Shown: positions 28,188 through 58,000 of the stretch, one piece after another
Numbering within the stretch: the first letter of the stretch is position 1
Layout of the letters: each line of letters starts with the position of its first letter
From: Anaeramoeba ignava BMAN
Lineage: Eukaryota; Protista; Anaeramoebae
Length of the DNA stretch: 64,000 nucleotides
Reading direction: 5' to 3'
Assembly: GCA_028826165.1 (NCBI GenBank)
Contig: JAPDFW010000136.1
Location: forward strand, 434,001 to 498,000
Made by a program: the position numbers and the translations under genes
Notes under the pieces: generated by a model
The model's database searches: none
What the model saw: only the letters and a program-made list of their open reading frames with translations
Told to the model about the DNA's origin: nothing

Positions 28188-29113
28188 TTAATAGTCATCG
28201 TCGTATTGTTGATCATCACCATAATCTTGTTGGTCACCATAGTCTTGTTGGTCACCATAATCTTGTTGGTCACCATAATCTTGATCTTGTGCTTGTTGTT
28301 GTTGTTCAGCTTGTAATTGTTCTTCACTCTTTGGTTCTCTGTAAACAGCTCCAGATTTTTGGATGCTCTTATCAGCAGCTAAATTAAAAATTTAAATTAA
28401 AAAATTAATATTTAAAAATTAAAAATTAATGATTTAAAAAATTTTCCGTTAACAAATTAAAAAATAATAAACAAAAAGAAAAAAAAAAAAAAGCAAAAAT
28501 TTTTTTTTTAAATTTTTTTTTGCTTTTTTTAATTAATTTTAATTTACTTTCTCCATGTTCGCTGACATTTGGATAATGTGCATTGCAGTATGGTTTTCCA
28601 TCAAGAGCTCTGTATGATCTCATAGTCAAAACTGTTCCACAAACTGTGCATTTGAAGCATCTCTTGTGATATTCTCGGCCCAGTGCAGAAATGAAAATGA
28701 AAATCAAAATGAAAATAAAAATAAAAATGATCAAAAAAAACGTAATAAAAAAGATAAGCCTTTTGTTTTATAAAAAAAGAAAAAATTAAAAACAAAATTT
28801 TAAACACTTATAGATTGCGAGTTTCTCTTTTTCGTAAACCTAATTTAAATAAATTAAATTAAAAAGAAAAAAAAATATTTAAAATATAAAAATTAGTAAA
28901 ATTGGTTCAAATTTAATAAAAATTTTTATTAATATTTATTTTTATTATTTAATTTTTCATTTTAAAAAAAATAAATCATAAAACAAAAAAAAAAAAGCAA
29001 AAAAAAAATTTTTTTAATATTTTTCAATTTATATTATATTTATATTAATATTTTTATTATTTAATTATTTAATTATTTACTGTTTTTCCGCAAAAGTAAC
29101 ACTTGTAAGACAT
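28188..29113 (-). CDS. Small single-LIM-domain protein (LASP/CRP-like LIM) with a (QDYGDQ)n acidic tail
   Basis: Exons 29113-29081, 28839-28812, 28682-28548, 28378-28188 give MSYKCYFCGKT|VYEKEKLAI-L|GREYHKRCFKCTVCG..DGKPYCNAHY.. with C-x2-C-x17-H spacing. Intron 2 is AT-AC. Confidence 0.9.
28683..28811 (-). other. Non-canonical AT-AC spliceosomal intron (ATAAGT...TGCAC), 129 nt
   Basis: Removing it restores exact LIM spacing; retaining it gives an in-frame TAA. Confidence 0.78.
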
Positions 29114-55000: not shown

Positions 55001-58000
55001 TTCAATCAGTTCTTGAAGCTTTCCAAATCCTACTTTTTCTTCAAACAATTCTATATTTTGGGGATTATTATAAAATAATTGATTCAAAAAATCAAGGATT
55101 GAAGACAAACAAAAACTATTTAAATTGGATATTGATAATATTAAACAAATCATGTCAAAAGCTGAAGTTTTGGGGAGTAATTCTTGTAAATTTTCGTTGT
55201 TTTTTTTCAATGAATTGACTAGAATATGGATTAAATTTCTAGTTAGAGTATGTATAGATTGGTGATTTTTGAATTTTTCTTCATATTTTTTAAACCCCAT
55301 AGCAGTTTCTTGAACAATTCTTTGTATGTCTGCATTTTCTATGTTGATTTTTGGCAATTCTGCTTCAATTTCTTCATTATTGTTGCTTTGAATTATTTTT
55401 TGGTTCTGTCCAAATTCTCTTTCGTAGTATGCAAGACTTAAAATCAAACCAATAAATGCTTCAAAGAATTCCAGATCAAAACTTGTAAAATTGCTTGGAA
55501 TAGATATCATCATTTTGAATATCATATTGATTGAATATATTTGTATTTTGGGATTAATAAGTAGATAGAAAAGTGTTTGGATCCATTGAATATCTTCTGT
55601 AGCTTTTCTTCGAATGCCATCATTTAAAAAGAGGAATTCAAGTAACTCGAAAATTTTAAAGCGAGTTTGATGGAATAAATTGGATGAAGAGTGCTTTCCA
55701 TTGTTGCCTGATGTTCCAATTCCAAACAAAAAGCGAATAATAATATGATAAATTCCAAATCCATCAATTTGGTGCATGTGATTTGAAAATGTAGTGATAT
55801 CTGTTTTGAGTATTAAAAGTAAAGTTTGTGCCACATCAAAAATAATATTTAGTTTTGTTGGGTTTCTTTTTACGAGTTCGATAAGAGCAAACAATTCATA
55901 AGAACTTGAATCTGGATTATTAGTAGCAATACTAGCAAGAGATTGGTGAGTATATTTTTTCATTCTTATTGCCATAGAATCTTCGCCAATTCCAATATCC
56001 TAACAAAAAAGAATATCAAAATTAAAATATTAATTTAAATATTTTTTTAATATTTTTTTAATATTTGATTTTATATTTAATTTAAATATTTTTTTAATAT
56101 TTAATTTTTAATATTTGATTTAAATATTTTTTAAATATTTGATTTAAATATTTTTTTAATATTTTTAAAATACATGATAAATATTTGATAATAAATTAAA
56201 CCAAAAATTATTTGAGTGTATAAATTGTATTGCTGCTAAAGGAGTCCAGAATTTTAAAATATAATTAAGCGTGTAAATCCGGAATAAATTATAAAATTTT
56301 GATTTTGATGATTGATTGTGGCAAAGTAATTTCGTGAAAATTTCAATCATTTTTGTCGCCAAATTTTCACTTTGTGAAAAATTTTTAGAAAGAATTTCCA
56401 CATTTGATTCTTTCACAATCGCTCTTAAAAACCGTTTTTTAATTGCCATTTTCTGAATAATTTCTTGTTCTTTCTTGTTCTTTTTGCTCTTTTTTGTTTT
56501 AGAGCTTTGCTTTTGTTTTTTCTTTTTGTTTTTATCTTTTTCCTTCTTCTTTTTCTTTTGATAATTCTCTTGGATTTTCAAATTTTTCAAACTTATGCAA
56601 GTTATTTCATCTAATTTTTCAAATAATTGCTGGAGTTCAATGTTATAAAAGAATTCAAATGATATTTTAGGGAATTGAATAGGTTTTGTTTGCCGAATAT
56701 TTTTTGTTAATAATGGAACATCATGTGGAAGTTCTTTTGAGAATTCTAAATAAAAATAAAATAAATTAAAATTTAAAATTCAAATTAAAATTCATATATA
56801 TTTCTTAGAAGTTTACTTTTCGAACTTTTTTTAGAATTGATTTCTGTTTTTTGAATCACTTGATATGAATTATCGATATCTATAAATGATTCGTTGTTAT
56901 CGATATTATCAGTTGAAATATTTTCGTTTGTGTCTTCGATTCCTAATATTATAGGATCTTCTTGTTGTTCCTCTTTTAGTGCTTCCTTGATTGTTTGAAT
57001 TAAAGTTGTTCCGATCCAAAGCATTGAATCTGTCAAAAAAGTGATTTCAGGATTTTGACAAAAAAAAGAATCAATAATTGGATTGCTATCAATTAAAGTT
57101 TGCATAATTTCAAGGCCAATCATTTTGGTTTGGAATTCTTGATGTAGAATTGATTGCTCATCCATTTCGGAAAAGAACTCTTCAAATCCGAAATAGGGAG
57201 ATGCTTTAAAAATGCAATTTTCTTTTCTTTTTTCTTTCATTTCGTTTAATCCTTCTATTTTTGATAACGAATTTTTTGGTGGTTCAAAAAGTTTTAATAT
57301 TATACTTGACACATATATTGGCTCTCTTTTTTGGAATGTTTTGTGATCCAAAAATTCCTTTATTAAGGAAAGAATATCAAATCTTATTGAATATTGTTGG
57401 TGATAAAAATTAAATAATTTGCGGAAATGGATAAATTGAAGAAGTAAATCTTTTTTTCAATTAAAATTTAAAATTCAAAATTTAAAATTAAAAAAAAATT
57501 CTTATTATTTGTTGGATAATAATTACATATTATTGAAGTGTTCAATTCAGTTAAAATAGAAGATTGGAATTGAATAGAAGCTATTGGATTTTGATAAGAA
57601 GTTAGTATTTGAGTTAATCGATGAATTATATATTGAATTAATTGGAAATTTAAAAGGAATATAGAATCTTGTTTTTCTTTTTTTGTTTCAAACTATTGGA
57701 AAAAAGAAAAGAAAAGAAAAGAATTAATAAATTTGTTTTGTTTTTTTGGAAGTATCAATTTATATTCAAAAATTAATGAATAAATGATAAATACCATATA
57801 AATCATTTTCCCAAAAAAAAGAACTGATTGTTTAAATATTGGGACTAAAATATCAAATAAACCAAGTTCGATAAATTGGAATTGATTATAATTTGATTTT
57901 GATAAAATCAAAAGAACCTCAATAGAAATCAAACAAGATTGTAAAGATAAGGTTTTCGGTTCAAATTCTTTGGTTTTTTTTTTTTTTGAAAAAGGAATTA

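Follow-up and report, generated by a model that had tools for sequence, protein, structure and literature searches.

A probable major-type AT-AC intron in a small LIM-domain gene of Anaeramoeba ignava

The analysed stretch of DNA (hereafter the window) comprises 64,000 nucleotides of the Anaeramoeba ignava BMAN genome and carries, on its minus strand, a gene encoding a protein with a single LIM domain (Table 1). All four exons of the gene are intact. Exon 3 matches the Pfam LIM family (PF00412, E value 2e-11) over profile positions 19-55, and exon 4 matches no Pfam family. Because exon 3 alone covers this part of the profile, exons 1 and 2 must contribute the first zinc knuckle free of insertions. 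LIM domains conform to the pattern C-x2-C-x16-23-H-x2-C-x2-C-x2-C-x16-21-C-x2-(C/H/D). When exons 2 and 3 are joined across AT-AC ends, the spacing counted in a script is C-x2-C-x17-H-x2-C-x2-C-x2-C-x17-C-x2-H, in agreement with this pattern.

Table 1. Coordinates of the LIM gene and its parts within the window.
Feature	Position	Strand	Description
Gene	29113-28188	minus	four exons, single LIM domain; Anaeramoeba ignava BMAN, contig C126:462188-463113
Exon 1	29113-29081	minus	ATG and first zinc knuckle, MSYKCYFCGKT
Intron 1	29080-28840	minus	GTAAAT...TTAG, 241 nt, 5.4% GC, phase 0
Exon 2	28839-28812	minus	VYEKEKLAI, then T (first base of the Leu codon)
Intron 2 (candidate AT-AC)	28811-28683	minus	/ATAAGTGTTT...TTTCTGCAC/, 129 nt, phase 1, 16.3% GC
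Intron 2, 5' splice site	28811-28806	minus	ATAAGT, i.e., GTAAGT with A at +1
Intron 2, 3' part	28757-28683	minus	T-rich hexamer repeats and branch candidates, then TTTCTGCAC; terminal AC at 28684-28683
Exon 3	28682-28548	minus	TG, GREYHKRCFKCTVCGTVLTMRSYRALDGKPYCNAHYPNVSEHGE, then A; remainder of the LIM domain (GREYHKRCFKC...SEHGE)
Intron 3	28547-28379	minus	GTAAAT...TTTAG, 169 nt, 7.7% GC
Exon 4	28378-28188	minus	acidic, Gln-rich tail with QDYGDQ repeats; TAA stop at 28190-28188

Read directly from the minus strand of the window, the 129 nt of intron 2 have the ends ATAAGTGTTT...ATTTCTGCAC. The GC content of this segment is 16.3%, compared with 36-41% in the flanking exons. A sequence-only reading of the window had described an AT-AC intron with a donor of the major-spliceosome type at this position, and its coordinates, together with all of its sequence statements, proved exact when the window was read again.

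The host gene is the sole small LIM-domain gene of its type in A. ignava BMAN, and no other close copy occurs in the genome. We found no paralogue sharing intron 2; in the nearest one (contig C137, locus L006), the intron sits at a different position, behind CFK. When metagenome contigs were scanned for exact occurrences of a 32-nt segment of exon 3, none was found. In three A. ignava runs, approximately one third of the words sampled from a 1.25-kb region are present, which is close to the exon share; this proportion would fit RNA composed of exons only, and we regard it as a hint of expression only.

All joins between exons 2 and 3 were enumerated over every donor and acceptor position, and GT-AG, GC-AG and AT-AC were taken as terminal pairs. 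Among these known pairs, the C-x2-C-x17-H spacing is given by AT-AC at 28811/28683 only, and the enumeration thus reproduced the earlier claim that AT-AC splicing restores this part of the LIM domain. The splice joins ...GCA ATC T to TG GGC CGA..., and the product reads ...A-I-L-G-R-E-Y-H.... There are 27 stop-free registers in which 129 nt are removed, and a known terminal pair, AT-AC, is found in one of them only. Retention of the intron leads to a stop codon, as had been stated, since read-through from exon 2 reaches TAA after 17 codons. Given the word frequencies of the window itself, ATAAGT combined with AC in a compatible position, in any of the 27 registers, is expected approximately 1.4e-4 times.

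It is very unlikely that a junction other than AT-AC is used at this site. Two registers adjoining the AT-AC register, TA...CA and CT...GC, encode an identical protein with the same I-L-G, and homology alone therefore cannot set the junction to the base. To our knowledge, neither TA-CA nor CT-GC is a splice-site pair, and both lie outside the set of known pairs. The second candidate is a GT-AG intron of 48 nt (28807-28760), which had been noted in the sequence-only reading and is indeed the sole GT-AG alternative that is in frame and stop-free. Removal of these 48 nt would leave 27 extra residues in the first zinc finger and give C-x2-C-x44-H, a spacing that exceeds the LIM range and is unlike that of four orthologues found in the sister lineage. 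An intron of 48 nt would also be much shorter than the modal length of 76 nt, and the 6-nt period of a hexamer microsatellite accounts for the open frame across the 3' part of intron 2.

This microsatellite occupies the 3' tract of the intron (28757-28689) and consists, on the gene strand, of the units TTTTCA, TTTTGA and TTTTTA, with 143 matches in the genome. Repeats of this kind, which are common in the genome, keep one frame open and thereby mimic coding potential. An origin of intron 2 from an introner or another mobile element was considered and discarded, as its genome matches are to the hexamer microsatellite only. Introns of BMAN (32,108 in total) have a mean GC content of 8.1% and a modal length of 76 nt (PMC11550330, Supplementary Note 1). 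The 16% GC of intron 2 exceeds this mean of 8%, which counts against the reading as a major-type AT-AC intron.

A protein search with exon 3 identified four LIM proteins of A. flamelloides featuring 79-81% identity. All four orthologues read MSYKCFACGKTVYQTEVLKILGREYHKRCF..., and the counterparts of exons 1 and 2 are MSYKCFACGKT and VYQTEVLKI-L, respectively, in the joined context ...KILGREYH.... In the A. flamelloides genes (L001 and L002), the corresponding sequence, ...AAA ATT CTT GGA AGA GAA TAT CAC..., is uninterrupted and no intron is present at the site. The sequence-only reading had named orthologues in related species as a means of checking the intron, and ILGREYH is unbroken in all four A. 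flamelloides copies. Since the orthologues are uninterrupted, exactly 129 nt must be removed in A. ignava to obtain I-L-G-R-E-Y-H. Intron 2 is absent from the four copies, and in the absence of an outgroup this pattern fits either a gain within A. ignava or a loss on the sister branch. A 2026 preprint gives an intron count of only 22 for A. pumila, the species nearest to A. flamelloides.

Introns 1 and 3 lie near, though not at, the intron sites of A. flamelloides (L001, 1526-1690 and 1859-2080). Intron 1 is in phase 0 after Thr11 in A. ignava and in phase 1 inside Gly9 in A. flamelloides, the two positions being 8 nt apart. Intron 3 is located one codon later than its A. flamelloides counterpart, in the same phase. 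Sliding or independent gain of introns, or small indels at their boundaries, could explain these offsets. The C-terminal tails of the LIM proteins also vary. The tail consists of QDYGDQ repeats in A. ignava and of EEQQEY repeats in A. flamelloides (P0001-P0004), and the sequences are unrelated. Tails of both species are nevertheless alike in being acidic and Gln-rich, in having regularly spaced Tyr residues and in ending in Y or YY.

The degree of conservation bears on whether the locus could be an artefact, either through assembly or polishing errors at both intron ends, or through decay into a pseudogene with a disabled GT-AG intron. Exon 3 differs from its A. flamelloides counterpart in 24 of 44 codons, and 15 of these differences are synonymous and 9 non-synonymous. 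Orthologous proteins of the two species have a mean identity of 37.3% genome-wide, and the approximately 80% identity of exon 3, along with the 15 synonymous changes among 24, makes a pseudogene or a double error unlikely. The gene is probably alive, as indicated by its intact exons, its conservation far above the genome average and its status as the sole close copy. Two errors would have to fall on exactly the two terminal bases and to yield the one known compensatory pair, and the sequence-only reading rightly held such a coincidence to be unlikely: the chance expectation is about 1e-4, and the same ends recur in an intron of the cysteinyl-tRNA synthetase (CysRS) gene. Moreover, 33 AT-AC introns are annotated in the genome, in an annotation with mapped RNA-seq. 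The one observation in keeping with an artefact or a dead gene is that the protein search, from which records of the species' own genome were possibly excluded, retrieved no public A. ignava protein with exon 3. Overall, we consider such an origin most improbable.

The donor of intron 2, ATAAGT, differs from the U2-type consensus GTAAGT at +1 only, and it is thus U2-type by the criterion of Sheth et al. (2006, PMC1557818). Branch candidates of the yUnAy form (TTCAT or TTGAT) are found at -10, -17, -24 and -31, and a pyrimidine tract follows, the intron ending in TTTCTGCAC. Positions +2 to +6 of ATAAGT are complementary to the universal 5' end of U1. Quick covariance-model searches of the genome for the U1 (RF00003) and U12 (RF00007) RNAs of A. 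ignava returned neither. These blanks are uninformative, as a U1 must exist; the U1 of A. ignava itself not having been found, the pairing relies on the universal U1 sequence. The single genome match to ATACTTACCTG was rejected as a U1 gene, as it sits in a region coding for leucine-rich repeats.

The remaining LIM-gene introns, as well as those of one paralogue, begin with GTAAAT or GTAAAA. A heuristic that places donor sites in the window by drops in GC content was too noisy to provide a 5' splice-site consensus. Two matches to RTATCCTTT in the window, as well as ATATCCTA at position 55995, were evaluated as U12 introns and rejected.

The U12-type donor, RTATCCTT(T), is not present in the LIM intron, in which positions +4 to +7 are AGTG and not TCCT. 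Compared with the U12 motif ATATCCTTT, the donor ATAAGTGTT matches at 5 of 9 positions (+1 to +3 and +8 to +9) and at none from +4 to +7. The last 40 nt of intron 2 contain no U12 branch box, whether resembling TTCCTTAAC or the TTCTTGAAT box found in the U12-type intron of an MPDU1-like gene of the same genome. The absence of the box is weak evidence, because the authors of the genome study found no conserved branch motif in the U12 set of A. ignava (PMC11550330).

AT-AC introns are a regular, if rare, component of this genome. According to Jerlström-Hultqvist et al. (2024, PMC11550330), who mapped poly(A)+ RNA-seq to the genome for its annotation, BMAN has 33 AT-AC introns, and 32 introns begin with (G/A)TATCCTTT, 27 of them with A. 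From these counts, the U12 motif ATATCCTTT is present in 27 of the 33 annotated AT-AC introns, which leaves six without the motif that the authors do not discuss. No AT-AC introns occur in A. flamelloides (PMC11550330). Of the 32 U12-motif introns in A. ignava, 27 have AT-AC ends, whereas all 8-10 such introns are GT-AG in both A. flamelloides strains (PMC11550330, Table S3B).

Our genome searches, in line with the scan for snRNAs and further AT-AC introns suggested by the sequence-only reading, identified both a U6atac candidate and other AT-AC introns. The U6atac candidate (C71:58882-58994; L016, 1501-1613) scores 29.9 bits (E 1.6e-4), the Rfam gathering score being 33, and carries the boxes AAAGGAGAGA and GGUUAGCA. 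Its AAAGGAGAGA box pairs with the U12 motif ATATCCTTT and not with AGTGTT. A genuine U12-type AT-AC intron of 423 nt, /ATATCCTTTT...TTCTTGAATATAC/, is present in an MPDU1-like PQ-loop gene (L029) and has the TTCTTGAAT box. Judging from the U6atac candidate and the U12-type introns, A. ignava does have a minor spliceosome, and AT-AC ends as such are not foreign to it.

A second AT-AC intron with a major-type donor interrupts the CysRS gene (C96; L021, 1603-2226). This intron, /ATAAGTTGAA...AAAAACAC/, is 624 nt long with 4.8% GC, and its borders, /ATAAGTTG...AAACAC/, split the conserved sequence ...NVTDIDDK|IILRSRE.... Both introns have been re-read, and ATAAGT...CAC is common to them. G at +5 is compensatory in GC-AG introns. 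By analogy, and given the GTAAAT and GTAAAA donors of the other introns, the G at +5 of the LIM and CysRS donors may be compensatory as well. At the NELF-B locus (L023), ATAAGCTT was not found on either strand, nor was ATAAG on the plus strand, which is the gene strand.

Given this background, removal of the LIM intron by the minor (U12-dependent) spliceosome, tolerating a degenerate 5' splice site, has to be weighed. The 27 U12-type introns among the 33 with AT-AC ends and the presence of the U6atac candidate are in its favour, as are the little weight carried by a missing branch box and the U12-like distance of 10 nt between the nearest branch-candidate A and the 3' end. We nevertheless regard it as unlikely. 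AGTG at +4 to +7 of the donor cannot pair with AAAGGA of the U6atac candidate, and a clear pyrimidine tract together with several yUnAy sites are features of the major type. The U12-type intron of the MPDU1-like gene has both ATATCCTTTT and the TTCTTGAAT box, and the LIM intron has neither. In addition, ATAAGT, which corresponds to the U1/U6 consensus, occurs in two independent introns, those of the LIM and CysRS genes.

We therefore favour the reading that 28811-28683 is a real spliceosomal /AT...AC/ intron, most likely removed by the major spliceosome, with a probability of roughly 0.7. As to the U2-type AT-AC intron proposed in the sequence-only reading, the donor, the branch candidates, the pyrimidine tract and the LIM frame all speak for it; the spliceosome itself is assigned from motifs only, and use of the junction in transcripts is likewise predicted from sequence. 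The additional suggestion that splicing of this intron is a regulatory, rate-limiting step finds no support.

The proposed mechanism is modelled on the AT-AC introns of human SCN4A and SCN5A and on a yeast precedent, and would involve the major spliceosome (U1, U2, U4, U5 and U6). Positions +2 to +6 of ATAAGT would pair with U1 and later with U6, as in the consensus GTAAGT. A TTCAT or TTGAT site (yUnAy) 17-31 nt upstream of the 3' end would serve as the branch, followed by the pyrimidine tract. In the second catalytic step, A at +1 and C at -1 would take the place of the non-Watson-Crick contact between G at +1 and G at -1.

It is conceivable, although doubtful, that both spliceosomes of the A. 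ignava lineage tolerate A...C intron ends to an unusual degree. The idea is based on the fraction of U12-motif introns that are AT-AC (27/32, 84%), compared with none in A. flamelloides, and on the existence of up to six major-type AT-AC introns, the two re-read sharing ATAAGT...CAC; a quick search also returned no Dim protein of the DROL1/TXNL4B type. In Arabidopsis, splicing of AT-AC introns depends on this factor. The quick six-frame search for it, which covered the whole genome, gives a lower bound. One gene of the DIM1 family was found (C5:67408-68350; L024 and L025), and its product has the GTGNNN loop of the DIB1/TXNL4A subfamily. If the lineage were so tolerant, the shared catalytic core might be altered (U5/Prp8 or second-step proofreading), or GT-AG introns might be converted to AT-AC by mutation. 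The introns of the LIM and CysRS genes would then be the visible outcome.

U2-type AT-AC introns have formed a recognised class since the 1990s. Since the class is long established, the LIM intron leaves known splicing biology unchanged: this kind of intron is already documented, and the LIM intron adds one member. Nor is the kind new in this genome, where six AT-AC introns lacking the U12 motif can already be deduced from the counts of PMC11550330. If transcripts confirm the junction, the intron would provide a clean major-type AT-AC example from the Anaeramoebae, a deep-branching group in which both intron systems coexist. For annotation, the consequence is that gene finders restricted to GT-AG introns will break or miss a conserved LIM gene.

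Major-type AT-AC introns account for at most 6 of the 32,108 introns of A. ignava (0.019%). In human, mouse and fly, the class has a share of 0.003-0.008% of all introns, with 15 of 185,966 (0.008%) in human (PMC1557818). The AT-AC introns of human SCN4A and SCN5A have been shown experimentally to be U2-type (Sheth et al. 2006, PMC1557818). The LIM intron resembles them in its predicted AT-AC ends, in agreement with the U2 consensus except at +1, in its pyrimidine tract and in lacking a U12 box. In contrast, the LIM intron belongs to an anaerobic, deep-branching protist whose genome is 80% A+T, and the dependence of the intron on the major snRNAs is predicted from sequence. The LIM intron is also absent in the sister lineage, whereas the borders of the SCN introns are conserved from human to puffer fish.

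Within A. ignava, the LIM and CysRS introns have the ATAAGT donor and the ...CAC end in common, and both interrupt a highly conserved motif. They differ in length (129 and 624 nt, respectively), GC content (16% and 4.8%) and exon end (TCT and AAG). With the U12-type AT-AC introns (the 27 with ATATCCTTT, and that of the MPDU1-like gene), the LIM intron shares its predicted terminal dinucleotides and the organism. Unlike them, it lacks both a ATATCCTTT donor and a box resembling TTCTTGAAT near the 3' end; its donor is of the major type, and it has a pyrimidine tract. In yeast, a change of the first intron base from G to A is rescued by a change of the last base from G to C (cited in PMC1557818). 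This suppression would explain how the major spliceosome completes the second step on an A...C intron, although the yeast pair was engineered, whereas the pair in the LIM gene is natural.
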